A stretch of 64,000 nt of DNA from Setoptus koraiensis (lineage: Eukaryota > Animalia > Arthropoda). Under the pieces are notes generated by a model. It worked only from the letters and a program-made list of their open reading frames with translations. It was not told the DNA's origin and did not search any database. A program made the position numbers and the translations under genes. Below, piece after piece: positions 8,732-36,412 of this stretch; the stretch's first letter is position 1, and each line of letters begins with the position of its first letter. The stretch lies in contig CM106586.1 in assembly GCA_048013815.1 (NCBI GenBank), positions 2,666,001 through 2,730,000 on the forward strand, in the 5' to 3' direction.

Positions 8732-9028
8732 ATGTCAACTTACCAAGGAGCCCAGAGAATTCAAAAGGTGATGGTACAGCCCATCAACCTCATATTTAGG
8801 TATTTACAAAACAAAGCTAGAATACAGGTCTGGCTGTCAGAAAATGTCAGCATGAGGATAGAAGGAGCCATTATAGGATTTGATGAATACATGAACCTAG
8901 TTTTGGAAGATGCCTGTGAATATTATCTAAAAACCAAAACAAGGAAGCCGGTCGGTAGGATACTTTTGAAGGGTGAAAATATTACTTTGATTCAGAGCGC
9001 CACCACAACTGTCAAATCGGAAGAATAA
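8732..9028 (+). CDS. SmE: Small nuclear ribonucleoprotein E, single exon, 98 aa
   Basis: [17 protein letters not shown]...IQVWL...[16 protein letters not shown]...[14 protein letters not shown]. Confidence 0.96.
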
Positions 9029-9163
9029 TAATCATTCTCATTATAATGAATTTGTAAATCAGTTTATTACTTATTTCCTTAGATACATTATTACACTCTC
9101 TTGAGTACATTTGGACACATACACATAATTATTGTTTTTCTCAACATTGATCTCCGCATATCA

Positions 9164-11389
9164 TCATTTCATCTTAACTCGAAAGCGTTCATAATCTTTT
9201 GCTGAGCACATCGGAGTCTCAACCGGCAATATCCTGTTAAACTTATTGTAGTCAATGATTGTTTGCGCATAAGGACCGTAACCCTGTGTGGATATGATAG
9301 GCTCAAATCTGTATCCCCATTTGACTTCACTGGGAAGATAAGATGTTCTAACTTGAATTGACTGACCAGTTGATTCCACAGTACCTTCTATGACAGTTAT
9401 AATTTCAAATTTGAAATTCGCCAGTTGCTCGGAGTTCATTTCATAGAATAAGCTGTCTCTGTCGATTATGTGTACTATGGTTAGTGGCCAAATTAAAAGA
9501 AGATTGTTCCTTGCGTCATCTATTTTAACATCCAGTTGATGGTGATAGAAGGGAATTATTTCACCTTCATTGGTCAGTTTTTGACTGACCAATGAGGCGC
9601 GTATCGTTGCCCCTATGATATGTGATTTGCTCCTTACGTCGCCAACCCTGAATGTTAAACACATTTGATCATCCCTCAGGCACACTGTGGCATATTTACT
9701 AAACATTATAGTCTATATTTATTGATGGATGCAAATGATAAGAGGTGAGCATGAGGAAAGTAAATTAGCCACGTGCTTTCTGCTACATTCAGCCAATTCA
9801 ATTAGTTTGACTCGCTTGCTTACCTGAGACCTCTTAGCGGGTCGAGATAATTTTGCGAATACCATACCAACAATCAGACATTCTACTACAACTCCGAAGA
9901 TTAGTTGTGAACAAAATATTATTATGGCACCTGGGCATTCTACGCTGATTATTCTTGAACCGAAACCAAGTGTTGATTGAGTTTCTATAGAAAATAAAAG
10001 TGCAGCTGAAAAAGAATGTACGTTAACTATGCACGGCTTCCAATTTGGATCATTATCGTGTGACAGATCATCATGAATATATAATACAATATACCATATT
10101 GCTGCAAAGAATATCCATGAGAATACAAAACCCAACGAGGCCGCAAGCAGATTGTATCTCCACTTAATATCTATCATAGTTGTGAATAGATCTCTGAAGT
10201 ATTGTCGCCTATCTATATTGTCTATGTTAAGATTGACGGCACCATTTTTTCCTACCAATCTAGGCAGAGGAGCCGTCTTAGTGCTACCCGCTGTAACTGT
10301 TGTTATAGTTCCACCAACTCCTGCCACTGTAGCCGGTATAGATTGATGAATTTCCGATGTACGCTGATTGTGCGACAGTATATTATTATTGATTGCGTCA
10401 ATATTAGTTAGATTACTGTTGTGGTTGTTGTAAGTAGTAGTGATAGTTGTAGTAGTTGTAGGTGGATAGGTAAAGCCTTCAAAATGCACGATACTATTAG
10501 CTCGTTGTTGTAGATGACTTCCGATGATGTTGTTGCTATCACTGCCAATGACATTAGCATCGTGTTTCACATGTTCAATAGAGGCTTTAAGGTTAGCTAT
10601 ATCGTCGTCATTAGGATCGGCTAAAGTGTCATCTGCATGGTTATTGTTGATGTTGTTGTTGTTATCATTACTGATGTGATTATTGTTATTATGTAAGAGA
10701 TGACGCTGTTCAACATGATTGTCATCATCATCTTCATCATCATTATTATTAATATGTTCGCGGTGATTGGCCAATGATACCATGTTTAAATTATTTTCCT
10801 GTAAATATCTAGCACCATTGGTATCATCCCTAACATTGAGCCTTTGCAGACATTGATTTAGTGTAACATTAATCAATTTTTTTTCCAAACGCATGTTTAT
10901 CTGTTGCTGTGGGTCCTGATAAGAATTATCATCGCAAGCACATTGATCATTTAATTGTGGACTATCTACCGAATAAGACATCAAACTCTTGGATGATTCA
11001 TTGAAATCGAGTTGCTGTTGTTGTTGACTTGAAGGATTAAAGTCATCATTATTTTTTAAAGTTTTAGTATTAGTTTCTCCCAATGTTTGATGGTGTGTAT
11101 TTCCATTATAAAACTGGTCGGTGTTGTTATTGTTGTTGTTATTAACGAGGGTATGACCAAATGATTGAGAGGAGGATGCTGAGGGTGTAAGCGATGATGA
11201 GGATTTCTGTTGTTTGTGTCGATCAAAATTGGATGCTGAAGATGAAGAAGTTGAACAATCTGACTCAAGTGATGATAACAATAATGTTGAAGTAGTTTCA
11301 GTTGAAATCTGTGTGTGATATGTTTGTTGGTGTTGCTGTTCTTGATTAATACAATTTCCCTGTAAGTTTTTATCTTTCTGGGTGGGCAT
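9164..11389 (-). CDS. Inward-rectifier K+ channel; two coding exons (11389..9824, 9712..9164), about 704 aa, with a long low-complexity N-terminus
   Basis: RYFRDLFTTMIDIKWRY, FLFSIETQ-type pore loop (LLFSIETQSTLGFG), VFAKLSRP, WPLTIVHIID and SYLPSEVKWGYRF. A phase-0 GTAAG...ATAG intron at 9823..9713 joins KRSQ to TIMFSKYA. Confidence 0.92.
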
Positions 11390-12379: not shown

Positions 12380-13865
12380 CTGTCGACTGTATTGCGAATG
12401 TAAATTTTAGTAGGTGGAGTTTACCCAACACTCTAATGTGTGATGATCTCATCGAAGTTCAAACACACTCTCACTACGAGCATATCTGAGATATTGCTCA
12501 AGATGTTGTCGTAGTCAATTAAATATTTCCGGTTGTCAAGATGATAACCGGAAATATTTAGTTTGACTTTGAATTTTAGTTTGTTTTCGAATCTTCGAGA
12601 CACCCCTTCACACTCACCAAGCAACTAATTAACAAGTTGGTGCCATCAACTTGTGGATATTTGAATCGCCTATATCTTGCTTCACTATATTTCGCTTGAA
12701 TTTTCAACACAACACCGCTCTACCATGCATCTACTATGCTATGCCCATTCTCGAGGCTTCGCACATTCTCGCAAGATCAAAAGGCATCGCGAATGGGTTA
12801 TTTCATCAGGACGAATTTCTTAATTGTTCACACTGCTCGCTGCCTTCGAGTAAATGAAGCTCCTCATCATGTGGCCAACTTGTTAGTGAAAACGAACCAT
12901 GCCGATAATCAATACTACAAGACAATAGTGAGGCCTCAAGTATTATCAAGACTGAATGAATATCGGAGAGCAAACAAACAATCACCGCAGTGGCTCAACA
13001 AAAGTGATGAACGACACAAGTGGCAACAAGTGCATTCACGTACAAGTACTTCCGAACTTCGCACACTTGTAATGTCTCTATCGTATTAGGCCGTGTCCTT
13101 ATCTCAACTTTGGCTTGTGTTCTTATAACAAGTTTGTTGATGACATCATTGTCTCAATTCAAATTAGCACTGACGTATAACTCAAGTATTTGTTTTTTCT
13201 TTGTAGCCCATTTTATTATTGAAGCCGTTGGGCAACTCGAGGTGCCATGTAAGTTCAGTGTGCGGATGTTCCGATGGCCTTACACCTGCTTCGAAATAAA
13301 TCCTATAGGGCGGCGCTACTCAGCTTTCTTTAAAGCTACGTAAGCGAGTCATGACTCACGACGACCAGTTGATAACTGGCTAATACTGTAAGCAATGTGC
13401 ACCGTTGCTTATTAGCGCTTTCACTCGAGTCCACTTCACAGCATGTTAAAGCAAGCAATAAACAAAAATGAATTATATGAAGTAGAATTGAACAGTCTGC
13501 GTTCGGCTGCACATTCTTAGGCGATGCCAGCGCCCCTTGCAGGTACCTCCCGAATCAGATGCAAGGTCATTAGAATATGGGCACACAGTGCTCATTATGC
13601 AAATCTCGTTGCACGCAAATAGCAACCGAGATAAATCAACAACGAGATTGAGCACCTAATTAAAACTGGCCATTTGTTTCGTCGAGAAGCTGGAATTCTT
13701 TATGAAATTCTTCAGTGTAGTTATAATATCCCCGAGGCCATCTATCGGCGCCTTTAGGAATAGCCTGATGATCGACACTAGTCCGGCAACGATTTCATCC
13801 ATGATGATTTGTATCCAAGTCCCAGGATGGCGGCACCGTCGTGCAACTTGCGCAGACAGCGACGG

Positions 13866-14306
13866 CAACAGATTAGATAAGGGTAGAGATAAAAATAAAA
13901 TCAAGATAATAACGCCAGCCATTCTATTATTAAAAGCTACAACATTCGGGCTGGCTGGCGATTGTTGGCTTGTCTTGCACTTGCTGCGAGCGCAACCAGC
14001 TGTTGTTGTTGCAATTGTTGTTGTTGCTGTTGTTGCCAGTCTGGGCAGGTTGCAGCTAAAGGAAGCGCGACCCAATTCGAGTTCAAGTGCAGCGAAAAAA
14101 GGCTACGCCGACTAGTCAACTTTTGCGCAACAACAACGGCAACAACAGCGGCAACAACAGCAACAGCCAGTTGTAACCTAGATACGGGCCGATGGCTCCT
14201 TTCACTCCTTTCGCACAAATTTATTCATAGCTCTCGCTGAGCCGAGCCGCTCGAGTCGCCGGGCCTGGCCGAGTCCAGTTGCTGCTTCTTTGGGCCAGTG
14301 TGTCAG
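13866..14306. repeat. Direct-orientation diverged copy (A') of non-coding segment 35503..35898
   Basis: Shared blocks such as cagctaaaggaagcgcgacccaatt.gagttcaagtgcagcgaaaaaaggctacg and gttgtaacctagatacgggcc...ctctcgctgagccgagccgct. Confidence 0.9.
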
Positions 14307-15363
14307 AGCCACGACTGACACACTAGCCCAAAGAATGCTCATTTTATATGATACGAGTATTATTATCCGACGCTACATTGCACTCATAGCAAACATGAAG
14401 CGAAGGTTATTGCATTCGTGCGACTCAGTTATCCGTCTCAAATCGAATGCGATACCAACCTGAACAGTGAATTGGGCGACGCCAATCAATAGAGTTGCAC
14501 ACATTGTCACTGGCGTGCAATGTTCCATTATTCAATTTATTGCAATTATCCTCCATATTGTTCCAATCAATACCAAAACTATTACATTTCATATATAACA
14601 TTCAGACGACATTTGTTTCGACGATGCAGCAGAAGCCGTTGATAGGGGCTTCGTTGTTTCACTTGGCGCAACTATTTCACATTGTTTCGACTTGGTTCGA
14701 CAAACTGTATTTCAGTAATATTGCATTATCTGCACAGAACATTCCGTTTGTGGCTGTAGTGACCCCAGAGCTATTATTATCTTCATAGGCACTATGAGGA
14801 TTCAATATTAATTATGTAGATTGACCACCAGTAATTCATTGTCAAGTTGGCGTGGTGTGACCTGAGGGCACTGGCGACACGGACCAATGGGGCGACCATG
14901 AATTGGATGAGCCCGAATCAGATGAAAAAGACCTATAACAGACATAAGCTGATCAGAAGGCCTCTTTTGGCTACGTTTGTCTAGAGAAAGACAGAGAAGA
15001 GAAATTGATTGTTATCAAATAATCTACTGCGAAATCATAATGAGCTTTTTTGAATGAATTTTGCATCCTTCAAAACTTGTAGATGACGCTCTTCTCGCTA
15101 TTGTTTCAATAGCGATCTTTCTTTGATGTGCTTGTTGGCAACACTAAAGAGAAGACCCGAAAATTAAAATATCTCAAAGCAATGACTGAAGGTATCGCTG
15201 GCATTAAATTATGCATGTATTAGATGTACGACCATGAAATACTCGTTCAACGAAATCTCCCTTCTATGAACTGTCCGTCAAGCAAGTATATGAAAATGAA
15301 ACGTTGCTTGATGAATGAATGATTTCGTAGTCAGTCGTAGTTGCTGTTGTTGTTGCTGCTGCT

Positions 15364-16237
15364 GCTCACCTGTGTATTTCAGCCGTACACACTCTCGATC
15401 TAACCATTGATGTTGTCGTTGTTTTTATTATTATGTTACTGGCTAATTTTCAATGCCAATCCGTACACTGACCCCAAATGGAGACACACTCAACAGGTGA
15501 ATACGCTAACTCTCTCTGCTTGTGTGTTGCGCTGGCTTGACACAAACACAAGCCAACTGTTGTTGTTGCTGTCGTTGTTGTTGTCGTTGTTGTGCACCCT
15601 AAAACTGTGTGTCCCTTTTCACTGTAACTGTCTAGCCAGTTACTGTGAAAGAGCCGCAAAAGAGAAGGTAAAACAAGTGAACTTATAACAGTTTTGGGCT
15701 CGATTTGAGTTGCGCCAAGTTGAGCCGAGCAGAGATAAGTTGAGCAGAATGGAATGGAATTGAATTAAACGCAATCGTATTGAGCAGAAATTGGATAGAA
15801 CACAGATATATCCCAAAACTGCTATTGGCCGTCTCTCTGGCAAGCTGTGTCAGTTGCTGCCTTAGTATTGCAGACAAGTTTGACTTTGACCTTAATATTT
15901 GTCGACGAACGCACAAACCAGCAAGCTTGCCACAAATCACAAACACACACACACACGCACACGCACACACCAGAGAGCTTGCCAGAGAGAGATTGTGGCC
16001 GTCATGGCAGAGACACGGACAAAAACAGAATCAGGTGATACAGGTGAATCAGGTATACAAAAACAGAATCAATGTGCGCTGACAATTGCCAATGTAAACT
16101 AACTGTAACTAACTAACATAACAGTTGATACTTTTGTTGCGCTCGGTAGGATATTTATATACAACAATGTCAAATCAATTTATACAATCGTTAAGTAATT
16201 ACTAATTACTAATTAGGTTGACCGCTAATCAGTGAGT
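15364..16237. repeat. Direct-orientation copy (B') of non-coding segment 37269..38069
   Basis: Long near-identical runs, e.g. ttattattatgttactggctaattttcaatgccaatccgt and gcagacaagtttgactttgaccttaatatttgtcgacgaacgcac. Confidence 0.92.
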
Positions 16238-17068
16238 GAGTTTCAAATTGTTTCTCGAGGATGGCACCACCATCGTGCAACTGTTCATGACGTGATGTAA
16301 ACATGGCGATATACGGAAATGTGTATCACAATGAAAGTACATGGCGACTAGCCTATGTGTCATAGGTGGCAAGTTAGGTTTTAGATAAATGGATGTGATA
16401 AAATGGAGAGATAACATGCGAGCATGAGAGAGGTCATTTGCAATCAGATGGTAGGTTCGTTGGTCGTAAATTGTTAGTTTGTGACAGATGCAACGATCAC
16501 ATTGATGGCATGTAGAAGCGACCATATAAAAATGTAGATATAAATAGATACGATGTGTTGGCTGATTGAGCTGTCAGCCAATGACAATCGCCACAAACAA
16601 GCAGCTCGATAATTGCAATTGCACACACGCACACATAAACAAACCCAGAATAAGACGAACACAAAAACAAAGTTTATTAGTGAGAAATAATAATTTTCAA
16701 ATAATGAAAATAATATTTGGCAAACAAAACACAAATCTTTGGCTAGTTGTGAGCGATGGAATTGTTGAATTTTAGTTGCCAACTTGAGAATAATTATTTA
16801 ATAATAGTGATATGAAAATTACTGCATAAGATTGCACACATGCGACACTGATAGATAGGTGGTGGCGCACTGTTTGCACTGACAACAACAACGAGATGGC
16901 CAATCAACAAACGAGAAACAATTAATGCTCGCTAATGCTGTTGTCCATTATGTCAACATTGATTGCATAATAGTGATGGCAACAATAGCAACAATGGCGC
17001 GAGATGGGAAATTGGAGACAGGGTGATCATTCGTTCATTGAACGTCCACTTTCGATTCATGGCAACTT

Positions 17069-17069
<1 letters not shown>

Positions 17070-17162
<93 letters not shown>
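17070..17162. repeat. Perfect (TTG)31 microsatellite
   Basis: Direct reading. Confidence 0.9.
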
Positions 17163-17163
<1 letters not shown>

Positions 17164-17886
17164 CGTTATGTCTTTTTATGTGGCCACACTATCAAGTTGC
17201 AATGTGTGCGCACATAAGTGATTTATACTTATGCAATATATGCTAGTATTTATGGCAATGACAAGGATGAGTCTTGATTTTACGAGATTGCTCTTTGCTT
17301 GTTTGCCGCGAATCGTCGACGAGCGAGTTGTGTCATTAGCTGCTAGTTGTAGCTAATGCCACAAGTGAAGCCGCCGAAGTTTGTTGGTAATTGTTGCCGA
17401 TCGTACACACACACACACACACACACACAACTACGAGATGACAAGCACGTCACGCATTGAACTTGATCAAGTCAGGGGTCACCTAACACTTGGTAATGGT
17501 TGTGATATATGAGTTGTTGAACTCATTTGTCTAATTGCTGCTGTGCAAACGATGGACAAAAGTGGCAAGCTACTTTTGTTGCTCATCACACACTCACAAT
17601 AGTTTGTGGGCACGCGCTACCGGCAAACAAACCAACAATTGGCTGGCCAGTGTCACTGTCAAGGCCCCTTGTTGGTGATGCCTTGTGTAGTGGCCATCAT
17701 CGATAATAGATTCAACCCGATGTAAACAGGGCAATTTCTGTTTGTTATTTGTACTGGTTCGTTTATTTTCTTCGCCCGATTAAAGTGTTCAAGTACCTTG
17801 TTTGTAGCCTGTTTAAAATCAACAATGCATGTTGCATAATGGAACTTCTTGATTGGCAACATTGTGAGATTTAAGTATTTTTTTCG

Positions 17887-18490
17887 CTGACCAATGAGGC
17901 GCGTATCGTTGCCCCCGTGATACGCGTACATGATCGACAACTCTGAAAGTTGAACACCTCCCTCAAGCACACTGTTTACATATTCGTTTATAGTACTTTT
18001 ACTCTCTGATGGACGCAAATGACAAGCGATGAGTGAAGTATGCGAATAGTGAATTAACCACGTGCTTTCTCGTGCCACCTTCAGCCGCCTGGTGATCAAA
18101 AATTATACTCGCTCGCTTACCTGAGCGGGTCGAGATAATTTTGTAAAAACCAAATATCATACTAACAATTATGCATTGCGCTGCCCAATTAGTTATCCAA
18201 GATTACTTGTGGACAAAATATTATTATCTGAGCTCGAATCAATTCCAATGGCAATTGCAATCAGAATCGCAATTTGAGTTTCCATAGAAAATAGGAGTGC
18301 AGTATGGCAATATTATCGTGCCACAGATCATCATGAATATACCACATTGCTCTTTGTATTGTCATGGATATTCCTTGCTGCAAATTCACGAGAATCCATG
18401 AGAATCAATGAGAATCCACGAGAGAATACAAAATCCAACGACTCGCATGTGAGCCGGCGTCAGCCAACAGATCGTATATACTTACACTTA
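17887..18490 (-). pseudogene. Degenerate Kir fragment (copy of about 9585..10166) that retains the intron
   Basis: ctgaccaatgaggcgcgtatcgttgcccc, cacgtgctttct and ctcgct.gcttacctgag...gcgggtcgagataattttg match the Kir gene; many indels, no intact frame. Confidence 0.85.
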
Positions 18491-18679
18491 CTTTGTTAGC
18501 GGCGAATACCACAACTGGCAGCAGCGGCCGCACTCGCCAGTCGCCAGTGCCTAGTCTGCCATAAAGTGTGCTCACTCTCTATTGATGCCACAGACATTGC
18601 GTTGAATGTTACGTAACAGCGCATAGATGCTACTATGCTCTATGTGATGCAACCGCGTGTGTGTCTGTGCTCCCATTTG

Positions 18680-18692
18680 AGGGCATTGACCG
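18680..18692. promoter_or_regulatory. EcRE-like IR-1 element AGGGCA-T-TGACCG
   Basis: Imperfect match to the EcR/USP IR-1 consensus, about 70 bp from a GTTACGTAAC palindrome (18608..18617). Confidence 0.35.
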
Positions 18693-19077
18693 CTAACTAG
18701 CAACTGTGCTTATGACCTCGACTCTCACTCAGTCACTCACTCTTACATAACAGCAGCCGCAGCAGCAGCCCATATGAGCCCAGAAATGGCCTGTCCATGC
18801 AGACACAGACACAGACACAGATAGAGGCGCACCAACTCGCTTGTTGTTGTTGTTGTTGTCGGTAGTTGTTGGTTGTTGCTGTTGTTATATACACTCTCGA
18901 GCCCCCAGCGTAGTCGCACGATAGTCGAGGCGCCCATCATCTGGCGTGCCATTGTGTCTGCGATATATAGTTATGTAACAACAACAAACAAAGTGAGAGT
19001 GAGTTTGCCGCAAAAGGTCAAACTCAATAATAGATGAGTCGGTGCTGCATTTGAGTCTGCTGCTATTACATGCCATA

Positions 19078-19485
19078 ACTATATATAGCGCGGCCTCTTG
19101 TATGGCGTTAAGGGGCTCAAACACATGACCAATGAAAACAATCAATTCCTGCCTATGCATGGCCGAAGTGGCCAATGCCAAGGATTATCCTACTAATTCA
19201 AATGAGACATATTTTCTATAAATCTCAACAATGATGATGTAATCGAGAAGGAAAAACAAATATTTTTTGCACATTCAGAGAGCTTGGCCTACATATCAAG
19301 ACGAGATTTGAGATTGCCGATAAGCCTGCTGCCAGTGATAATTGTGGCTGCAGATCTTCTTTCTCTATAGATACAAATAATAATAAATAACAGTTATTAG
19401 ATTCTGTCTTATAGCGGCATCGAACTTGTTAGGGTTAATTTTTCATTTTTTGAATTGGCGCTTTTTCGGTTGAAAAAGGTGCTCC
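19078..19485 (+). pseudogene. Degenerate IscA2 copy including the 3' flank (source about 8156..8605)
   Basis: cggcctcttg, atgccaaggattatcctac.aattcaaa and aataataaataa.agttattagattctgtc.tatagc; frame disrupted. Confidence 0.88.
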
Positions 19486-19520
19486 AAGTTCAATCCATAG
19501 GGTCGAAGTTTGCAAGTTTG

Positions 19521-19815
19521 GTGGCCAAATCAAAACAATATTCTCTCTTGCGTCATCTATTTTGACACATCGAGCTGATGGCGATGAAATTATTATTTTA
19601 TTATTTTACCTTCTTTGGCCAGTTGTTGGCAGACTAAGGAATGGAATTACAATATTATTATGAAAGTTAACCGAGTGTTGATTGAGTTTCAATAGAAACG
19701 GTGCAGCTGAAAAAGAGTGTACGTTAACTGAACAATGTTCCCGATTCTAATCGTTATCGTGTAATATACCGTCATGAATATGCTGTGCTGATGCGAAGAA
19801 TATCCATGAGAATAC
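19521..19815 (-). pseudogene. Second Kir fragment (sources about 9484..9597 and 9915..10125, joined by a deletion)
   Basis: gtggccaaat...cttgcgtcatctatttt, agtgttgattgagtttc.atagaaa, gtgcagctgaaaaaga.tgtacgttaact and gaatatccatgagaatac. Confidence 0.8.
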
Positions 19816-20100
19816 ATGTTGACTCACCAAGGAGCCCAGAGAACTCAAAAAGTGATGCTGCCAACAACCTCACATTTAGGTATTCATGCAACGAAGCCAG
19901 AATACTTGGCGTGAGAAAATGTTAGCACGAAGACAGAAGGACTCATTATAGGATTCGTTGAATACATGAACCTAGTTTTGGAAGATGCCCGTGAATAGTA
20001 TCTAAACACCTAGAAAATCAGTCGATATCAAATAATAATTATTGTCATTGTAATGAATTTATAAATCTGTTTATTTATTACATATTTCGATTAGATATTC
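19816..20100 (+). pseudogene. Degenerate SmE copy with 3' flank (source about 8732..9090, internal deletion)
   Basis: accaaggagcccagagaa.tcaaaa.gtgatg and cattataggatt...tgaatacatgaacctagttttggaagatgcc.gtgaata; indels and a stop. Confidence 0.88.
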
Positions 20101-20112
20101 TTTAGATATTAG

Positions 20113-20358
20113 CTTGAATATTGACTGTCCAGTTGATTCTTCAGTGACCTATCACAGTTATAGTTTCAAATTTAAAATTGGCCAGTTGCTACTGGGAGTC
20201 CATTTCACATACGTGTGTGTCGATTATGTGTGTGCTATAGTTGTTGGCCAAATTAAAAGAAGATTTATGTTTATTACGTCATCTATTGTCACATCCAGCT
20301 GACAATGATAGAGGGGAATTATTTCACCTTGAGTGGTCAGTATTTGGCAGACTAATGA
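20113..20358 (-). pseudogene. Third Kir fragment (exon 2, source about 9351..9597)
   Basis: ttgactg.ccagttgatt, tttcaaattt.aaatt.gccagttgct, ggccaaattaaaagaagatt and ggaattatttcacctt. Confidence 0.85.
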
Positions 20359-20391
20359 TGCATTAGTAATGATGCATCGTTGTGCCGATGA

Positions 20392-21894
20392 TCAGTTCAT
20401 TATTGACAGATATAATTTCCTTGGCGAGGCCAACAGCAGCGGCGATGTGAGCGCCGATTTGAGGATGCCCGTAGTTGGTGTTGTAGTTGTTGAGCCTGGC
20501 GAGCTGGAGGTGTCGTTGAGATGATTAGGTGGTGACTGCAATGCCGCAATTAGTGCCGAGGCTTGGGGCGTTTTTGAATCTATTGGCGGCGATATACATG
20601 TGAGACCATTGAGTTGTTGTCGCTGTTGTTGTTGCATGTGATGATGATGAATTGGCGATATGGCACCAGTGAGAGTGTTCAATAGATGCTGATGAGGATG
20701 AGATGCTGACGATGGCGAGGATGCTGCTGAGGCGGTGGTTGTAGTGGTGGTAGTAGTGGTGGTTGTGGTGCTAATGGAGCTGGTTGTGTGTTGTTGTTGC
20801 TGTTGGTTGTTGGCAGCGTGCAGACTAGAATTAGTGCTACCACGGGTTGTTGTGGTGGTGGTAGTTGTGTCTGTGGAGCTTGTTGAGGAACTAGAAGAGC
20901 TGGAGCTAGAGGAAGGCGACGACGACGACGACGAGCTTGCTCTCGATTGATTAGACTTTTTGTGTTTCTTGTATTTGACTTTGTACATGTTGTAAACGGC
21001 GCCCGAGTTTCGTCCGCCGGGCATTCTGTCCTCTCTGACTGCGGCCAGCACCATGCCTTGGCGCAAACATTTCTGGAAGCGGCACGATTGACAGCGATTC
21101 CTCTGTTGTTTTGTTATGACACATTTGTCTTGGCTGACACAAGTGTAAACGCGCTTGTTTTGCACCGTTCTCTTGAAGAAGCCCTTGCAACCCTCGCAAG
21201 TTATAATGCCATAATGCAATCCGGTTGCCTTGTCCTCGCATATCATGCAAATCATCACCTGATTTCCGTTTTGTTGCTGGCTGGCCTGTTGCTGCTGATT
21301 GGCGGGGTCCATGAGTGCGGGATCCTGATGATTGTGATTGAATTGTTGTTGACTAGCGGATGTTGTTGTGGCGGTTGCGTGCGACGATGACGGCGCGCCC
21401 CCATTGGAGGTGGCCGTCGTTGTTATGGATGGCGGCGGTGTTGACACCATCAGTTTGTTGGCAACGGTTGCACAACCGTTTGTTGTTGTTGTTGTTGTTT
21501 TTGATTTGTTGATGTTGTTGTTGTTGTTGTCGTGCTGATGATGTTGATCGTGTTGTTGGTCTACGCACATGGGAACAACTGAATTATTGGTGGCGGCAGC
21601 TACCGACGATGGCGACAATGATAACGATGATGCCGACGACGATGATGAGCTAGATGAGAGCGTCGACGATAGCGATGACACCGACGACGTTGACGACAAC
21701 GACGACGTTCGCCTGCTGCCGGACGACAAATCTAGACACTGATTCATCCATGAGGGGGGCGATTGCGACAAATTGTAGCCGTTGTTTGTGTTGCCGTAAT
21801 TGAGCTGATTGTGGCCCAATTCGGCGACACTCAATGAGGCCAGTGTGGCGGTCATTGAGGATTTTCTCTTTTTTAGAGGCAGCCGTTGTTCCAT
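20392..21894 (-). CDS. Hr4: Miniature HR4 paralog, 500 aa from ATG, intact ORF, DBD only
   Basis: cacaccATGG start, [11 protein letters not shown], a C4 zinc-finger DBD identical to that of the main copy, and the same terminal [20 protein letters not shown]-stop. Whether it is expressed is unknown. Confidence 0.75.
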
Positions 21895-22651
21895 GGTGTG
21901 ATGTGACGACAAAATGCAATCGGATGCAATTGTGATAACCTTGAGATTGGCCAGATTTTGCTGTTTGAATAAAATATTTTTAATGGAAGCTATTGAAATA
22001 ATATCATTACTAACTGAGCACCGTAGTGTGAGTGTGTGTGTGTTGTGGCGTCGATGTTTACCCGAGCTAGCCAAAATTAGCACTGATGCTGCTGAGCGTT
22101 CAGTCGCAGCAGACAACAACTGCTGCTAGTTGCTAGTCGCAGAATGAGATCACCAGAAGTTGCACAACTTATAACTGTTAACGTTATTGTTACGTAACGC
22201 ATACCCTTAACTTTCAATGATCATGCTGCGAGGGGGAAGGAATGGGGGCGGGGTGGAGAGAGCGAGAGAGAGAGAGAGAGAGAGAGTTCAATAGTTGTTT
22301 TTAGTTCACCACACCATGGCACAAATAGCCCCTGGTGTCAAGGAACTCAACTACAGCTATGGCATGACCTTTTGAGACTGTATGAGGTGCTTGGCATTGA
22401 CACTAACGCTCACACAGACGCACGCACCAACTAAAGAAAGGCTTATAGTGAGACAAACGGGCACGCACACAGTCGAGCGCTCAATGTTACGTAATCAGGC
22501 CGCGCGCACACACACACACACACTGCAAAAAAGCCTCACTGTGACTCATCTTGTGCGTCTGTCACGTTGAGTTGAGTCGCTACTTGTTGTGAGACTCACG
22601 CGGACAACAACAGCAGCAGCGACAACAACGACGGCGACAACAACAGCAACG

Positions 22652-22696
<45 letters not shown>

Positions 22697-22775
22697 TCTC
22701 AATGGTCTCACATGTACTCACCAGCGGCTTACCAAGTGAAATGAGTGAAAGCAAACAGCCAGCCGATGCCTCAGT
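21895..22775 (-). promoter_or_regulatory. Diverged copy of the HR4 proximal upstream region (source about 30607..31800)
   Basis: Shared islands aatgagatcaccagaagttgc.caactt.taactgttaac, cccttaactttcaatgatcat, gagagagttcaatagttgtttttagttcacc and cacacagtcgagcgctcaatgttacgtaa. Confidence 0.8.
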
Positions 22776-23950
22776 GGTGAGAATGTGAAGTAGCAATGAC
22801 CTTTGAGCTAGTTTTGTTGATCTAGCCACAGTGAGGAGGCTCTGGCGCGATGCACAACAGATATCACTGACACTTGCTCCAGAATCATGCTATGTGACAA
22901 ATGTCATTGAATCCATTGGCCGATCATTGATACATTGCCATGATTTTTTGCTACTCGAGCCTCACCGATCAAACTTTCATCACATCGTCTCTAATGGCGC
23001 CATGTCGCTATGATGGCGCAATTGTTCATTTAATTGTAACGTTATTTGTATGCCACCAATACTGACAACTTGTTAATATAATGACAATGCAATTGCCATG
23101 ACTCAATCGATTGTGTGCCCACCTAAATATTTATTGAGTTGACCAACAAACAATTTTAAGCAAGCACCAGATTACGTTACAGTTTTATACTGCAAACACC
23201 CTGTCATAAACTCGATAAACGCAATAAATCTCTACTCTGCTCTCTGCAACTCCTATCTCACATTCTCTTCCGTCGTCATGCAACCACAATATTCTTATTC
23301 TTTACTCTATCATCACGCCTGACAATTCGCTCACATTGTAATTTCCAAAGTCTCTATTTCAAGGTCCGATTCCGGCCGAAAGGTGGCTACCAAATGTGTC
23401 ACAGTTGAAAACATTCATAGCACTGACTATTGATGTTATCAATATTCTGTTTGAAACCTGATATAAGACCTCATATAAGCGGTTAATCAGGCGAGATATA
23501 TTATGCTATCAGCGTCACAATATGGTTCATCTGAAATGCAAGAGAATGGAGATTAACGAATGTTGTCAGCTAACGAGAGATCCATTTGTGCTCAGTTAGG
23601 TTGCAATCAAAACGAAAAAGGAAGCATTTTCGTTACGAGAATGTAGAATGGACGAGAAGACACTCAAGCTAGGTCCACAAAATGAACAGCCTTGCATCAA
23701 AAATGAAATAATGTTAACTTTCCATCGAAAGATTGGCTACAACGCCAACAATCAATGGGCACAAATTTAGCATATCCGGCCAATGGCAGGCCGACCAGGT
23801 ATCTCACTAAAGCGCCAAAATCTTTGTCCGCCAAAGCTGTCTTCGCTAAGCAATTGAAAGCTCCTCTATGCCGACTGGAAAGGACAGGAAGCTAACGAAT
23901 ACTACGGTCTTGCTCTAAATTATTTAGCCCAAAGGCTACAAGATAGGATG

Positions 23951-24679
23951 TTTCAACCTTACATTAAAAGGTCCAAGATAAAACAAATACAACTCGAGCA
24001 AGATTCTGCTAGATCTTTGCATGATGTAAATACATTTCATGATGGCCAAAGAAAAGACTTTAGTCTCGTGGATTTCAATAGGTCTGGCGTCGCCCTTATG
24101 GAGATTGTATTTGAGCCAGATTTAAAAGACCAGCATGAAGCAACTTCTGTATTGACTGAACTCATAACTATCTTGAAATCAATAGGAACTTGCAGCTGTC
24201 AGCTAGAAGAGGGATCGTTGCGTGTAGATGCCAATATATCAATAGATTCTATTGACGGGCAAAGGTTTGATGGAACTGGTCGTGTTGAGCTTAAGAATCT
24301 CAATTCTTTGCGATCTCTAAATCGAGGTATCGAGCATGAGATCTTTAGGCAAGGGCAACTACTTCTGTCGGGCGAAAGGGTGGAACGTGAAACTCGATCA
24401 TTTGATACAAAAACTGGTAAATCTGTATTGTTAAGAAAAAAAGAAGAATCAATAGACTACCGATATTTTCCAGAGCCAAGCTTACCCCCGATAAATACAA
24501 CTGAGTATGAATCATTAAACTTAGAACAAACACTCAGTAAACGACCCTTTGAAGAAGCCATGGAATTAGCTGCTCAGTATGGACTTTCTATGGACTTGGT
24601 CAAGTATATTACCTCGGTTGATAGTATGAAGGATTTCCTCTTAGAGGCTCACAGATTCAGTAGATGCAAAAGTTTGGAC
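23951..24679 (+). pseudogene. Inverted, near-identical 729-bp internal fragment of GatB (source 2549..3277)
   Basis: The translation matches GatB from FQPYIKRS to RCKSLD. I found one difference by eye (24019, F to L). No native start or stop. Confidence 0.92.
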
Positions 24680-24849
24680 ACCAAATGTCCCATTCGTTGA
24701 GTGAAAGACCAATATCGTTCTCTATCAGTTGTGAACTAATCAAGTAGCAGTTCTTCGGCAATGGATAGTAAGTAAGAAAGTACGAATAACCTTTGTTCAA
24801 AAGGTATGCAGAAACATGATATATGAAAAAATTGATGGAGAAACCCTGA

Positions 24850-24961
24850 AACTGTCCTGTTCGATCAGTCTAAACAGGATATTGACAATCTAGCACGCGG
24901 CAAATTGCATTGTCGGGGTGCACCTCATCACCTGAAGAATCAACAAGTACTAACTGCACTA
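24850..24961 (+). pseudogene. Inverted diverged scribble fragment 1 (source 5873..5765)
   Basis: tcgatcag.ctaaacagga.attgacaatc...cacgcgg.aaattgcat...cacctcatcacctgaagaatcaacaagt. Confidence 0.8.
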
Positions 24962-25481
24962 TCAAGGAACCCTACTTAGGTGTTGGACTCCTATTGGGCT
25001 ATGCTTAGCCTATCTGTTCTCGGCTAGTCGAGCTGAGCACGAATACGCTAGTCAAATACCTGTTTTTTTGTCGTTTTTCTGCAATATTCATAGTAAAAAT
25101 TTCATTGTTTCTGACACTCTCACACCTTATTAAGACAATCTGAACAGTTCGGCCCCCCAGTGTAATGACCTTTTGCACAGTTATTACCGGCACCGAATTG
25201 TCCGGATTTTATCGAGTCCATGGTCCATCTGACCATGGACTCGATGTCCACCCGCTTCCAACTACCTGCTGGAGGTGGGAGTAGTTAAAAACTTACTTTT
25301 TTTACTTAAAGGGTGTTCCATTCCAAACGCACATTAGAACTGTTATTTAGTTTTCCTGATGTGTTTGATAGATTTTTTGGGTGTTGTAGCGACTAGGTCC
25401 CCACTCAGAATTTGATGAAACTTCACAAACGGGCTCCGTAGGGGCCCCATATCACAAATTGAGTAGGTATTTGTGGTGTTG
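24962..25481. mobile_element. 520-bp insertion splitting the scribble pseudo-fragment, flanked by a duplicated TA
   Basis: The source reads gcacTAagtaaag; the copy reads gcacTA-[520 bp]-TAagtaaag. No convincing terminal inverted repeats. Internal 15-bp-stem hairpin. Confidence 0.4.
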
Positions 25482-25817
25482 TAAGTAAAGAAGACAAGCG
25501 TAAAGTTGAGTTACTTGCAAAATATAAGAAAAGAATTATCTACATCGACAGTCGACTTACACCAAAAGGTCCCACTGAAGCTGCCGGTGTTAAAGTGAAG
25601 GATAAGATCTTGGCGGTGAATGATAAAGAATTTTATGAGGGCATAGATCATGGGACCGCTGTGGAGATTTTCAAAAAGGTCAAATCAAATTGTAAAGACG
25701 AAGCAGATGAGGACGAGTCGCAAGATGACGCATTTGTACAGCCGACAGACTATTTAACTAATAGTACAACTGTTAAAAAACAGAATTTATCGGAAGACAC
25801 TTTGCCTAACACGAATA
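25482..25817 (+). pseudogene. Inverted scribble fragment 2 (PDZ1 region, source 5766..5317, two internal deletions)
   Basis: KDKILAVNDKEFYEGIDH.TAVEIFKKVKSNC and DEADEDESQDDAFVQPTD match scribble. Confidence 0.88.
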
Positions 25818-26607
25818 TTTCTGTGAGATGTAGGAATCGGCCAAAAAATGGCGAATTGCGTTCAGAGAAACCATTGAACAATGTCGTGACATCATCTCGC
25901 CGAATATACAATCCAACACAAGCTAGAATATGCTTCGAAGTGAAAACGGGCGCCCCACGTAGGTATTGTGTGAGAGCCAAAGTCGGATAGTAGACGGATG
26001 AGTTGGGCATTCGCAACAATGGGGCGATTGTCGATGAAGTATGATATACTTGTATCATGTATGAAATCAAATAAAATGAAAAGTGCACGTTGATGAAACG
26101 AGCCAGAGCCGCGAGAAAATTTGTTACGCGTCTAGAGATAAATGATAATTATTACTCAAGGAGTTTTAAACTCACAAGAGCAATCTCTCTATTTATAGTT
26201 AGCTTATTTACAAATTATCAATAGCATTGCACTAAAATGTGATGATAAGTGTGTATGTTTATAACAATGTTTTCGTTGTTTGTTTGCAACCATCCGCTGA
26301 TTGACCACTTATATCAATATCAAATTGAATAAATTAATAGCGGCTCAAATTGTTGGCTAGTATGGTGGAGCGGCAGTTCATATACATAGCATACATTTGA
26401 TATTTGTAATTGTTGTTGAGTTGTTGCCAATAATAGTTGACAACTTGTAATGTAATGTATAATATATGATATTGCATTGTTTGCATCTATTCTATCTACG
26501 CTTGCCATCAGTTTGGTCGGTCGATCGAGTTTGATTGAATTCATTTGATTTTATTATTAGTAAACTTCATTTTAAATCAAGTGTCAACAATCAGTGCAAG
26601 CGAGCAA

Positions 26608-29600
26608 TCAGTTCATGATTGTTACGTACAACTTTCTTGGCGAGGCCAATTGCAGCGGCGACGTGAGCGCCGATTTAAGGATGGTGCTGCCCGTGGTGGA
26701 TGCCGTTGTTGTTGGCGTTGTAGTTGTAGTGGATGTGGCCGCCGTGGTTCCGTTTGTCAAATTAGCCGGACTTGCATTTGTGGTCAACGGGGGCGTTGTT
26801 GAGCCCGGCGAGCTGGAGGCCGTGGAAGCGGAAGTGCTATTGCCGGCACTGTTGCTGTCATTGTGATCGTTGTTGTCTTGGCCGTTTAGTCTGGGCGACA
26901 TTGGTTTAGGTGAGCCATTGGAACTGGGTGGACCTGTTGTCGATGTGCTGTTCAGTGCAGTTAATGAGTTTGAAATGTTCATTAGCGACGGCTTAACATC
27001 TTGATTCGACGATGACAATGGCGATGTTATCGAGGAAGAGGAACAAGTGGATGATATCGACGACATGGATGAAGTAGACAACTTTTTGGTTGAGTTGCGC
27101 TGTTGCGGCTGTTGAGTATCATTGAGATAATGGTTGTTGTTTGTTGGTGGCGATTGCAATGACGCAATTAATGCTGAGGATGGCGGTGATTTTGAATTTA
27201 TTGAGCTACTGTTAGACTTTGGTGACATCAACAATGACGACGACGACGACGACGACGACGAACCGGCCGCGTTAGACGATACAATTGGGGGCGATATAGA
27301 CGTGAGACCATTGAGTTGTTGTTGTCGCTGTTGTTGTTGCATGTGATGATGATGGATTGGCGATATGGCACCAGTGAGAGTGTTCAATAGATGCTGGTGA
27401 GGATGAGATGCTGACGATGGCGAGGATGCTGCTGAGGCGGTGGTTGTAGTGGTGGTAGTAGTGGTGGTTGTGGTGCTAGACGGGCAGCTGGTTGTGTGTT
27501 GTTGTTGTTGCTGTTGGTTGACCAGCGCGTTGTCGTTGGCGGTCTGCGGACTAGAATTAGCACTTGTATCACTTACTGTCATTTGCTCCAATTTGATATT
27601 GCTGCCTTGGCCATTGGCGTTGTTGTTGTTATGTTGTTGTTGTGACATAATTTGACCATTGGGCGGCGACGCAATTGGCGACAGCACACTCGTGGGCGAC
27701 GACATCGGGTACGACTGGCCAGTCTGGTTGTTGTTGTTGTGGTTGTTGTTCAACTGATTGCTGGCACTGCTGCTGGTAGTGGTGGTAGTTGTGTCTATGG
27801 ATGAGGTCGATTGTGTCGGCGACGAATTCACCGATTTCATCGAGGCGCCAGAACTGGAATTGCAACTGGAACTAGATGAGCTAGAGCTAGACGACGAGCT
27901 AGATGACGAGCTCGACGACGACGAGCTTGCTCTCGATTGATTAGACTTTTTGTGTTTCTTGTATTTGACTTTGTACATGTTGTAAACGGCGCCCGAGTTT
28001 CGTCCGCCGGGCATTCTGTCCTCTCTGACTGCGGCCAGCACCATGCCTTGGCGCAAACATTTCTGGAAGCGGCACGATTGACAGCGATTCCTCTGTTGTT
28101 TTGTTATGACACATTTGTCTTGGCTGACACAAGTGTAAACGCGCTTGTTTTGCACCGTTCTCTTGAAGAAGCCCTTGCAACCCTCGCAAGTTATAATGCC
28201 ATAATGCAATCCGGTTGCCTTGTCCTCGCATATCATGCAAATCATCACCTGATTTCCGTTTTGTTGCTGGCTGGCCTGTTGCTGCTGATTGGCGGGGTCC
28301 ATGAGTGCGGGATCCTGATGATTGTGATTGAATTGTTGTTGACTAGCGGATGTTGTTGTGGCGGTTGCGTGCGACGACGACGGCGCGCCCCCATTGGAGG
28401 TGGCCGTCGTTGTTATGGATGGCGGCGGTGTTGACACCATCAGTTTGTTGACGACGGTTGCACAACCGTTTGTTGTTGCTGTTGTTGTTGTTGTTCCGTT
28501 GTTGTTGCTGTTGTTGACATGAGAAAGTGTCGTAACAGGCGTAGACGGTGCAGAGGTCGCACAGACCGGTGAGGAGGAACTCAATTCCATTAGTGTGGGC
28601 AATTGTTGTTGTTGTCCATTTGTTTTATTTTGTTGCTGTTGTTGTTGACTTAGATTGTGTGTTAAGTGATGCTGTAAATGCTGATGATGTTGGTGGTGGT
28701 TGTTGTTGTGGTTGTGCTGATGATGCTGATGGTGCTGCTGTAATTGGTGTTGCAATTGTTGTTGCAGATGGTGGTGCGCATGATCGTGCTGCTGATTGGG
28801 TGCGGGATCTACGCACATTGGAACAACAAGATTGTTGTTGTTGTTTTCGTTGTTTTGATCTATCGATGATCTGTTGCTGTTGCTAGTGAGATGCAACTGC
28901 AATTGACTGTGATGTTGCTGCTGATGCTGATGATGATGATGATTGCTCGTCAAATGGTGATGCAACGCCGATTGACCAAATGTTGTTGTCTGTCCCGTAT
29001 TTATGGATTGCTGCTGCTGCTGTTGCTGTTGGTGCAATGGAGATATTGAATTTCTCCTCTGTTGTTGCTGCTGTTGTTGTTGTTGGTGGTGGTGCAATTG
29101 ACTTTGGTGGTGGCCCAAATGCAAATGATGCAAATTATGATGATTATTGTTGCTGTTGTTAGATGTCAATTGCGACGTGAGATGCGGATTGTTGGCGCTG
29201 GTGGCGCTACTGTTGTTGCTGTTGGTATTGAGTAATTGAACAGGTTGCAACAGTTGCGATACCAATTGTGAATTGTTTGATCCGGTTGTCGATGTTGTGG
29301 TCGTGGTCGATGAGTGACTTTGGTGGTTCTGATATTGGTTGTTGCTGTTGTTTGTCAATGATGAAGATTTCAATGGCGACGATGTGGCAGCACACAAATT
29401 ATGCAAATGATGTTGCTGGTGCGACGATGATACTGAACTGAGTGTGACTGGAGTCGGGGGCGACTGCTGGCCCCCAATTAGATGCAGCGATTGCAACTGT
29501 GACAACTGTTGTTGTTGTTGTTGTTGTTGTTGCTGCTGTTGCTGTTGCTGCTGTGATTGCTGCATTCCCGTTGACATAATCAACGATGAGGCCGATGAAG

Positions 29601-36403: not shown

Positions 36404-36412
36404 TCAAGGTCA
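36404..36412 (+). promoter_or_regulatory. TCAAGGTCA extended half-site (FTZ-F1/NR5A and GCNF/NR6A type)
   Basis: Exact motif match; function is inferred. Confidence 0.35.

Follow-up and report, generated by a model that had tools for sequence, protein, structure and literature searches.

Tandem duplication followed by random loss serves as a model for changes in mitochondrial gene order, and also for "gene accordions". Gene conversion between a gene and a nearby paralogue or pseudogene, a form of concerted evolution, is typified by CYP21A2/CYP21A1P. Cases of FoSTeS/MMBIR and chromoanasynthesis (PMC5120786, PMC4352052, PMC8421209) show many short segments templated nearby, in both orientations and with little or no junction homology, accompanied by small fold-back insertions at the joints, a palindrome at recurrent breakpoints and a net gain in copy number. 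In human segmental duplications, a rotated order has been described as the signature of circular intermediates (PMC7450558, PMC7188851). The locus analysed here shares the features of the FoSTeS/MMBIR cases and, as in the circular-DNA duplications, its duplicate is rotated but keeps the same orientation; local messy duplication of this sort is an already known kind of event.

The differences are also clear. The FoSTeS/MMBIR cases arose recently in the human germline or in tumours and have intact junctions, whereas this patchwork is old (about 17% mismatch), is found in every sampled mite strain, and is decayed and partly converted, and its origin in a single event is inferred. Unlike the circular-DNA duplications, which lie at a distant site, the copy resides inside its own source interval, with non-adjacent ends and an unclean closure joint. 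As expected from tandem duplication and random loss, there is a colinear, same-orientation unit with complementary survival (HR4 in one unit, Kir-SmE-IscA in another); however, some pieces are inverted or out of order, adjacent blocks are separated by non-homologous DNA, fold-back scars are present, and HR4 survives in two copies. Sharp-edged tracts of near-identity, silent sites included, within older homology, probably donated by the functional gene, recall conversion of the CYP21A2/CYP21A1P type, but here several unrelated fragments, direct and inverted, would be affected at once over 7-22 kb, in a direction that we infer.

Self-BLAST of the window (the whole stretch of 64,000 nucleotides that was analysed) revealed about 25 copied pieces of GatB, scrib, IscA, SmE, Kir, HR4 and the DNA upstream of HR4 at 13.9-26.1 kb. 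They form a patchwork of about 12 kb between two adjacent genes, Kir and HR4, in a tiny mite genome. This confirmed that the patchwork is real and consists mostly of dead, old copies of the surrounding genes. The sources are the following.

2054-3844, minus strand: GatB gene, source of GatB' (Pfam GatB_N, GatB_Yqey)
4073-7624, minus strand: scrib-like gene (LRR + PDZ), source of scrib' (Pfam LRR, PDZ)
8120-8497, plus strand: IscA gene (Fe-S cluster biosynthesis), source of IscA' (Pfam Fe-S_biosyn)
8732-9028, plus strand: SmE (LSM) gene, source of SmE' (Pfam LSM)
9164-11389, minus strand: Kir gene (Pfam IRK, IRK_C)
9164-9712: Kir exon 2, with exon 1 upstream of the intron, from homologue alignments and the Kir gene of a relative
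9713-9824: Kir intron, 112 bp, GT..AG, between two reading frames; missing from the relative's Kir
9567-9595: Kir palindrome, with a perfect 12-bp stem
26608-30648, minus strand: HR4, a 1346-codon reading frame with a zf-C4 domain, partner of mini-HR4
35503-35898: A, partner of A'
37286-38070: B, partner of B'

All the pieces listed in the earlier note, from A' through the inverted scrib', were recovered at roughly the positions it gave, and the self-BLAST added three more: 15071-15300, 13256-13528 and the inverted 26030-26110. The same-orientation pieces and mini-HR4 are as follows.

13256-13528: old direct copy of 56266-56538 within the Kir upstream spacer (62% identity, 284 bp, E=1e-15)
13866-14306: A', noncoding DNA upstream of HR4, direct copy of 35503-35898
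14286-14335: scar of a fold-back at the right edge of A', with 21-nt arms, the second being an inverted copy of the last bases of A
15071-15300: x', in direct orientation, an old copy of 32914-33154 that breaks the source order between A' and B' (62% identity, 251 bp, E=5e-7)
15395-16237: B', direct copy of 37286-38070
17868-18445, minus strand: Kir', copy of Kir 9568-10145 with its intron, beginning at the Kir palindrome
19091-19500, plus strand: IscA', a pseudogene copied from 8163-8605 and carrying frame-breaking indels
19518-19816, minus strand: Kir'', Kir 9481-9595 joined to 9964-10127 (19518-19640, or Kir''a, which terminates at the palindrome, and 19669-19816), within the IscA'-SmE' spacer
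19814-20097, plus strand: SmE', pseudogene copy of 8730-9085
20110-20390, minus strand: Kir''', copy of Kir exon 2 (9349-9619), abutting the mini-HR4 stop codon
20392-22119, minus strand: mini-HR4, an intact 575-codon reading frame with a zf-C4 domain
20923-21460, minus strand: DNA-binding-region tract, near-identical in both HR4 copies
22120-22716, minus strand: copy of the HR4 upstream region, source 30649-31800

Mini-HR4, which with its upstream DNA (20391-22716) matches 26607-31800 by self-BLAST, is the sole open gene in the patchwork. Excluding gaps, the pieces are 79% to 99.7% identical to their sources, a range that bears out the earlier description of divergence from near zero to heavily decayed. 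Copying occurred at the DNA level, as had been proposed: the intron, spacers and upstream DNA were duplicated together with exons, and the alignment of Kir' continues through 9713-9824. The local origin of the pieces also held, but not the limit of about 25 kb placed on it, since the source of 13256-13528 lies 43 kb away. The rest is filler, about 5 kb in total, with no self-BLAST match anywhere in the window.

14336-15070, 16238-17867, 18446-19090 and 25830-26606: filler, no match in the window
22717-23742: filler, no match in the window, at single-copy depth

None of the filler reading frames contains a transposase or helicase domain.

The seven main direct blocks (A', B', IscA', SmE', Kir''', mini-HR4 and the upstream copy) follow the source order in rotated form, for which the chance is 7/7! 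= 0.0014, or smaller still if orientation is counted. IscA'-SmE'-Kir''' is a single contiguous colinear copy of 8163-9619, with Kir'' sitting in its spacer. One extra tandem-like unit thus suffices for the backbone, and amounts to the central unit of a triplication that underwent two large deletions. The earlier note had postulated 3-4 tandem units with complementary deletions; its tandem-like, same-orientation order stood, whereas that number of units is not needed. Plain loss from intact units predicts neither the A'-B' intervening DNA, which by self-BLAST has no homology to the A-B intervening DNA and contains a piece from 32.9 kb, nor the fold-back scars at the junctions.

The inverted pieces lie between the HR4 upstream copy and the resident HR4.

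23743-23899, plus strand: scrib' part a, inverted copy of 6022-5879, of the old class (K2P 0.23)
23940-24679, plus strand: GatB' core, inverted copy of 3288-2549
24693-24843, plus strand: old flank of GatB', with about 79% identity to 2410-2348 and 2207-2174 in colinear order
24850-24961, plus strand: scrib' part b, inverted copy of 5873-5765
24962-25481: later insertion splitting scrib', of which 25225-25421 belongs to a high-copy repeat
25482-25829, plus strand: scrib' parts c and d, with 95-97% identity to 5766-5305, of which they are an inverted copy
26030-26110: inverted copy of 32347-32421

By self-BLAST, GatB' as a whole (23940-24843) matches 3288-2174 in inverted orientation. In the source, scrib' part b restarts 4-5 bp from where part a stops, which places GatB' inside scrib' with a loss of only 4-5 bp. 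The later insertion corresponds to 533 bp that are skipped by the contig of the source gene, and the summed contig depth of the repeat is about 5730 versus about 130. The right flank of GatB' reached an alignment score that 0 of 500 shuffles attained (K2P 0.24), whereas old homology at the left flank of the core was not significant (60 of 500 shuffles); the core may be a recent templated insertion that landed next to an old fragment. The inverted insertions had been taken as later arrivals; as the block holds old-class parts, scrib' a and the GatB' flank among them, it is not later than the direct pieces.

A single mismatch level is common to thirteen pieces of both orientations (pooled 16.9%; chi-square homogeneity p=0.67), with 16.7% in direct and 18.6% in inverted pieces (p=0.49), under an old/young grouping, the basis of the single-burst claim, that was set after the data were seen. 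Intermediate values were found for A' (9.7%) and scrib' b (9%). The young stretches are cores within older homology, a result at odds with the staggered ages that the divergence spread had suggested. In B', the core (15443-16024) matches B at 576 of 582 positions and its flanks are 86-88% identical; the GatB' core (23951-24679) matches at 727 of 729, that is, with 2 differences; and the left and right halves of A' are about 82% and 94% identical to A. The two HR4 copies differ at 3 of 528 nt in the DNA-binding tract, and four-fold sites differ at 2 of 75 in that block versus 8 of 29 in other conserved motifs, a pattern that we read as a putative conversion tract. Because such cores are embedded in diverged homology, the near-identical stretches of the HR4 DNA-binding region, B' and GatB' point to gene conversion, with the functional parent gene as the likely, presumed donor. 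Conversion between sequences about 80% alike is inefficient, and near-identical cores would need repeated conversion since the duplication.

The fold-back at the end of A' forms a hairpin (dG -22.1, z -7.5), whereas the source A does not (z 0.1). The tail of Kir' carries a small inverted-then-direct repeat of 10099-10140, and an inverted snippet (22677-22716, from mini-HR4 20595-20634) lies exactly where the copied upstream DNA stops. The edges of the perfect Kir palindrome coincide with the start of Kir' and the end of Kir''a; the relationship among Kir''a, Kir''' and Kir is star-like, their unique sites numbering 18, 11 and 6, respectively. Microhomology of 2-3 bp was found at two old junctions, one of them Kir''/SmE' (3 bp); the junctions are decayed, so this is not a full count. 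Extra pieces are located at block junctions. Together, the fold-back scars and the breakpoint cluster at the palindrome point to template-switching repair as the probable source.

For reads, we used Logan contigs and unitigs over 20300-26200. This interval is carried by contigs of runs X1, X2 and X4, from three studies, and of the low-depth X7; X4 differs by SNPs and is therefore another strain. Unitigs cross or abut the edges of GatB'. Flanking unitigs have single-copy depth and the unitig common to both HR4 copies about 2.3 times that depth. The expectation that Kir adjoins HR4 in relatives was borne out in one related eriophyoid (L004/L005), which has Ig, HR4, about 3 kb and Kir, HR4 and Kir sharing a strand and Ig lying upstream, which is also the order found in the window; synteny comes from this one relative, and three other eriophyoid Kir loci are not syntenic. 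From this arrangement, the patchwork would fill the ancestral HR4-Kir spacer of about 3 kb.

On balance, we consider it somewhat probable that the patchwork decayed from one old local DNA-level duplication burst and was later partly overwritten from the parents by conversion. It seems unlikely that IscA-SmE-Kir-HR4-A-B was instead amplified to 3-5 units that suffered complementary random deletions and later separate inverted insertions, divergence giving the age of each event. The direct blocks are indeed tandem-like, colinear and of single orientation, a triplication with two large deletions yields the backbone exactly, and Kir' and Kir'' could be remnants of further units. Yet the inverted pieces include old-class parts indistinguishable from direct ones, the young tracts are cores within older homology, and no repeated unit-to-unit junction was seen; the A'-B' DNA would still be alignable to its counterpart at about 17% mismatch, and fold-back scars and palindrome-centred Kir breakpoints are unexpected under plain loss. 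Numerous independent double-strand breaks between HR4 and Kir, each repaired by nearby copying over a long time, would fit the pieces from 33 kb and 56 kb, the intermediate divergences of A' and scrib' b, and the at least partial layering of GatB' and the repeat inside scrib'. Such independent insertions would not give a one-orientation rotation (p about 0.001 or lower) or a homogeneous mismatch over 13 pieces, and we regard this history as quite improbable.

A DNA circle running from IscA to B, either excised or copied from the neighbourhood, opened elsewhere and reinserted in the HR4-Kir spacer, would rotate the seven blocks in one step while keeping one orientation. We find this very unlikely: in the source, 3.7 kb separates the two ends of the extra copy (31800 and 35503), the closure joint B'|IscA' holds 2.85 kb, including Kir', and the inverted block and out-of-order pieces stay unexplained. 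Capture of gene fragments by a Helitron-like or Pack-MULE-like element, of which such patchworks are typical, could be suggested by the high-copy repeat; but all identified fragments are local, the filler lacks the domains mentioned above, no terminal repeats frame the patchwork, and the 20.3-26.2 kb unitigs are otherwise single-copy, which makes capture extremely improbable. Least credible is a chimeric or duplicated assembly of real genes. Assemblers can err at near-identity to parent genes, as seen in the HR4 DNA-binding tract and the GatB' core, but most pieces are 10-20% diverged and must be separate DNA, the same junctions occur at single-copy depth in contigs of three studies, one from a different strain, and the shared HR4 unitig has about twice single-copy depth. 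For 20.3-26.2 kb, the read contigs largely refute an artefact.

Under the favoured duplication burst, a single complex event, or a few close in time, would have inserted DNA into the spacer of about 3 kb that formerly separated HR4 from Kir. As the likeliest mechanism, replication or repair synthesis would have switched template repeatedly within about 45 kb, in a FoSTeS/MMBIR-like manner, perhaps partly triggered at the hairpin-forming Kir palindrome. The backbone would be one extra, rotated copy of the neighbourhood (A-B, then IscA-SmE-Kir, then HR4 with its upstream DNA), with extra templated pieces near its joints, Kir' at B'|IscA' and Kir'' between IscA' and SmE'. The copied HR4 upstream DNA would be followed, up to the resident HR4, by the inverted HR4 snippet, the inverted scrib' with nested GatB', and the inverted 32-kb snippet. 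Afterwards, all copies except mini-HR4 would have turned into pseudogene debris and the repeat element would have been inserted, while the HR4 DNA-binding region, the B' and GatB' cores, scrib' c and d and half of A' may have been repeatedly overwritten from the parent genes. Conversion of this kind, rather than successive insertions, would account for divergences that run from near zero to heavy decay.

Pfam scans of the long ORFs gave the gene map of the window, in which the patchwork of pieces copied from neighbouring genes (about 13.9-26.1 kb) lies between Kir and HR4.

Genes of the window, from Pfam scans of long ORFs
716-1987, plus strand, MFAP1
2054-3844, minus strand, GatB
4073-7624, minus strand, scrib-like LRR/PDZ gene
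8120-8497, plus strand, IscA
8732-9028, plus strand, SmE
9164-11389, minus strand, Kir
20392-22119, minus strand, HR4 paralogue of 575 codons (mini-HR4)
26608-30648, minus strand, HR4
near 46-47 kb, minus strand, Ig-domain gene

The closest relatives of Kir were found in eriophyoid mites (Aceria tosichella, Fragariocoptes setiger); for an eriophyoid mite, a gapless 34.5-Mb, two-chromosome assembly has been published (PMC11879100). An exact-protein look-up with SmE for further assemblies of this species gave no match. Neither Rfam nor tRNA scans of the complete window gave a hit, so A (35503-35898) and B (37286-38070), the two segments upstream of HR4 that are represented in the patchwork, are not known RNA genes.

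Self-BLAST of the window at three sensitivities recovered every piece listed in the earlier note and added several more. In total, about 25 templated pieces of 40-840 bp were found, 8 of them inverted, with sources at 2.2-56.5 kb; copies are marked below with a prime, and upstream' is the copied upstream DNA of HR4.

Pieces from the self-BLAST of the window
13256-13528, direct piece, matches 56.3 kb
15071-15300, direct piece, matches 32.9 kb
reaching ~22716, copied HR4 upstream DNA
extending to 24843, old part of GatB', matches 2410-2174
26030-26110, 81-bp inverted piece, matches 32.4 kb

The intron that Kir' had been said to keep is indeed present: Kir' (17868-18445) aligns unbroken with Kir 9568-10145 across the 112-bp interval 9713-9824, which is an intron, because it splits two reading frames, has GT..AG ends and is absent from the Kir of a related eriophyoid. 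The copying was therefore DNA-level. An RNA-mediated retrocopy is ruled out by the retained intron and by the spacers and upstream DNA that were copied as well. In the relative (L004:7815-7817), Kir is a single uninterrupted ORF, so the intron was either gained in the lineage of the window or lost in that of the relative; the eriophyoid clade is known for intron loss.

The backbone of the patchwork consists of seven main blocks (A', B', IscA', SmE', Kir''', HR4' and upstream'), all in direct orientation. Their sources run in the order IscA, SmE, Kir, HR4, upstream, A, B, and the patchwork is a rotation of this order starting at A, for which the chance is 7/7! = 0.0014 with orientation not yet counted. 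A global alignment showed that 19091-20390 is a single colinear copy of 8163-9619 (IscA, SmE and the 3' part of Kir); it abuts the stop codon of mini-HR4, and Kir'' sits in its IscA'-SmE' spacer. Kir' is placed between B' and IscA', at the joint of the backbone, and the stretch between upstream' and the resident HR4 holds an inverted mini-HR4 snippet, an inverted scrib' that encloses GatB', and an inverted snippet from 32 kb. The earlier note had proposed 3-4 tandem units; one extra unit, placed between Kir and HR4, is enough to explain the backbone.

Homology between the two HR4 copies begins 0-2 bp from the stop codon (20390-20394 and 26606-26610), and the 3' flank of mini-HR4 is a Kir exon-2 fragment in sense orientation. 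That a breakpoint should fall so exactly at the HR4 stop codon is an odd coincidence.

The same backbone could be reached by three routes: as the middle of a triplication followed by two large deletions, by two backward template switches, or from a re-inserted circle. Under the accordion history of the earlier note, in which tandem units undergo complementary loss, the copies should keep source order and orientation with wrap-around allowed, as the seven-block rotation does. However, no homology links 14336-15394 to 35899-37285, the former stretch containing the piece from 32.9 kb, and there is no recurring unit-to-unit junction, the sole candidate (between B' and IscA') being filled by 2.85 kb that include Kir'. 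The rotated block order would equally suit a circular intermediate, but the ends of the copy map to 31800 and 35503, which are not adjacent, and the closure joint contains the same 2.85 kb. Template switching of the FoSTeS/MMBIR type agrees with the short templated segments of nearby origin, direct as well as inverted, and with the fold-back or inverted templated insertions at junctions (the A' hairpin, the Kir' tail and the mini-HR4 snippet). The idea that the pieces are islands of one continuous diverged copy, with only parts detectable, was rejected, since a mismatch of ~17% keeps noncoding DNA alignable and the fillers (stretches without a match in the window) are unaligned.

The junctions carry scars that bear on these routes. 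A' ends on its right side in a hairpin with 21-nt arms (14286-14306 and 14315-14335; dG -22.1 kcal/mol, z -7.5), whose second arm is an inverted copy of the last bases of A, a source without a hairpin (z 0.1). In the tail of Kir', 10099-10140 is repeated inverted and then direct. A 40-nt inverted copy of mini-HR4 20595-20634, which resembles the version in mini-HR4 more closely than that in HR4, closes upstream' at 22716, exactly at a break between read unitigs. Kir itself contains a perfect palindrome with a 12-bp stem (9567-9595, z -5.6). The left edge of this palindrome coincides with the start of Kir' and its right edge with the end of Kir''a, while Kir''' stops 24 bp past it. Microhomology of 2-3 bp was seen at the two readable old junctions, the remaining ones being decayed or separated by filler. 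Synthesis-dependent repair with template switching could account for these scars. Polymerase-theta-type end joining at deletion junctions could do so as well, which keeps a history of duplication and deletion among the candidates; the evidence favours one extra rotated unit together with templated pieces at the junctions, formed in one old burst.

The age of the pieces was assessed from their mismatch to the sources. Thirteen pieces (Kir', Kir''a, Kir''b, Kir''', IscA', two parts of SmE', HR4 a and d, upstream 2, scrib a, the GatB' flank and the 32-kb snippet) were homogeneous when gaps were excluded (chi-square 9.4, 12 df, p = 0.67; pooled mismatch 391/2308, 16.9%), in a grouping whose weakness is that it was chosen after the data had been seen. 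Direct and inverted pieces differed little (16.7% vs 18.6%, p = 0.49). This homogeneity is compatible with one event, while the position of GatB' inside scrib' and the existence of pieces of intermediate divergence leave room for several; GatB' was inserted into a pre-existing scrib' copy, and just 4-5 bp of scrib were lost at the site. Compared with one another, Kir''a, Kir''' and Kir have 18, 11 and 6 private sites, respectively, and so form a star. Derivation of Kir''a and Kir''' from a shared intermediate copy is not supported: just 2 derived sites are clearly common to both, compared with their 18 and 11 private sites.

Other parts of the patchwork are nearly identical to their sources. 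A block of 176 codons in HR4 differs at 3 nucleotides, which are confined to its left end, and four-fold degenerate sites differ at 2/75 positions in this tract versus 8/29 in three other conserved HR4 motifs, where the differences lie mostly at third codon positions (17 synonymous vs 7 non-synonymous codon changes). The core of B' matches B at 576/582 positions, with flanks at 86-88%. In GatB', 23951-24679 has 2 differences in 729 nt, followed by a 139-bp deletion and then by colinear GatB homology of ~79%; this right flank scores 34 against a shuffle mean of 10.5, a score reached in 0/500 shuffles, and a test for old homology left of the core was not significant. Identity also changes within A' (~82% in the left half, ~94% in the right) and within scrib' (80% in part a, 95-97% in parts c and d). 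Older homology thus borders the near-identical tract on both sides in HR4 and B', and significantly on the right side only in GatB'. Silent sites are homogenised too, at the four-fold sites of HR4 and in B' and GatB', which are noncoding or dead, so selection alone does not explain these tracts. Judging from the substitutions, the HR4 block is read as a conversion tract within an old duplicate, with both HR4 copies under purifying selection.

The simplest reading is a single old age, with conversion by the parent genes wherever similarity stayed high enough, and it follows that the inverted block is no later arrival. Of the earlier account, local DNA-level duplication in a tandem-like order stands. 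Its successive events behind the spread of divergence give way to gene conversion, given the homogeneity of the thirteen pieces, and its later inverted insertions do not agree with inverted pieces that belong to the same mismatch class as the direct ones. A joint reading, which we put forward tentatively and consider rather unlikely as a whole, is that a single germline 'chromoanasynthesis-like' event, triggered at the hairpin-forming Kir palindrome, assembled ~25 templated pieces, drawn from 55 kb of neighbouring sequence, in the HR4-Kir spacer of a streamlined 34-Mb genome. It would then have spread to every sampled strain and given rise to a second functional HR4 gene, with parts of the scar still kept identical by parent-gene conversion.

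Support from reads was examined for 20300-26200, which is present in seven public runs, none of them an RNA run; contigs of four runs from four studies were aligned, and these short-read contigs show that the junction sequences exist but give no long-range order. One unitig (22717-23980) extends 41 nt into GatB' in three runs (X1, X2 and X4), and another (24650-24992) begins 30 nt inside GatB' and then exits it (X1 and X2). Run X4 has the same structure and SNPs of its own, so it represents another strain, and the joint between Kir''' and mini-HR4 is exact in the low-depth run X7. In X1, flanking single-copy unitigs have a depth of ~120-140, and the unitig common to both HR4 copies (20923-21460) reaches 294, which fits two real copies. 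At position 24307, the window has T and the contigs of X1, X2 and X4 have C, the letter of the GatB source; this mismatch may be a consensus error or the polymorphic edge of a converted tract.

The fillers, 0.65-1.7 kb long and ~5 kb altogether, have no match in the window and no recognisable protein domain. Pfam searches on 20 ORFs from the fillers and the A/B region gave no significant family, so neither transposon proteins nor gene fragments of non-local origin are indicated. Capture of gene fragments by a transposon is unlikely, as neither terminal repeats nor a transposition domain was found and depth over 20.3-26.2 kb is single-copy apart from one repeat. A 0.5-kb insertion (24962-25481) splits scrib' and contains a high-copy repeat (25225-25421) with a summed contig depth ~40x that of the flanks. 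Several motifs in this insertion (e.g. 24976-24986 and 25374-25388) resemble TTTGGTGTTGG, the telomere unit reported for an eriophyoid mite (PMC11879100).

In one related eriophyoid, represented by two metagenome contigs (L004 and L005), the Ig gene, an HR4 ORF of 613 codons, a spacer of ~3 kb and Kir follow each other on one strand; on its minus strand, the window reads Ig, HR4, patchwork, Kir. The predicted adjacency of Kir and HR4 is thus borne out in this relative, which has other genes (ECH, bicarbonate transporter) downstream of Kir. Three further eriophyoid Kir loci (L001/L002, L003 and L006) are not syntenic or too short toward HR4 and are uninformative on this prediction; a metagenome scan with mini-HR4 found 38 HR4-like loci, none of which, except L004/L005, also had Kir. 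The HR4 ORF of the relative (L005:5184-7022) is close in length to mini-HR4 and far from the large HR4 (1346 codons); the ancestral gene may have been about as long as the short form, with the difference due to growth of the large copy through low-complexity insertions and not to shrinkage of the mini copy. The distance from Ig to HR4 is ~15 kb in the window (30648-46084) versus ~3.3 kb in the relative, and no Pfam-recognisable gene lies in between, so the upstream region of HR4 also grew in this lineage. At L004:2270-3366, the public gene calls are two ORFs opposite the HR4 strand that miss the real HR4 frame, and for this reason protein databases probably lack the HR4 of such contigs.

Near-identical repeats persist in the region: GatB/GatB' (2549-3288 and 23940-24679; 729 bp, inverted, nearly perfect, 20.6 kb apart), B/B' (~580 bp, direct, 21.9 kb apart) and the HR4 copies (~450 bp, direct, 7 kb apart). 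These could drive deletions or an inversion of the genes between them. The GatB/GatB' repeat encloses scrib, IscA, SmE, Kir and most of the patchwork, and could give rise to an inversion polymorphism undetectable with short-read contigs. B' and A' (13866-16237) lie upstream of Kir (11389), where they repeat the arrangement of B and A upstream of HR4 in both order and orientation. The core of B' is kept 99% identical to B, and the segments are candidates for shared regulatory DNA.

All the processes involved are already known, and no new kind of mechanism is implied; what is new is an example in an unusually compact animal genome, with a patchwork more intricate than previously described. As a practical warning, the apparent 'ages' of duplicated pieces are unreliable in such regions, because conversion by the parent genes makes parts of old copies nearly identical again. 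In a genome that ranks among the smallest of animals, the region is a well-preserved natural case of a compact neighbourhood that was copied locally, scrambled and mostly discarded, and a second HR4 nuclear-receptor gene is its sole surviving product predicted to be functional.
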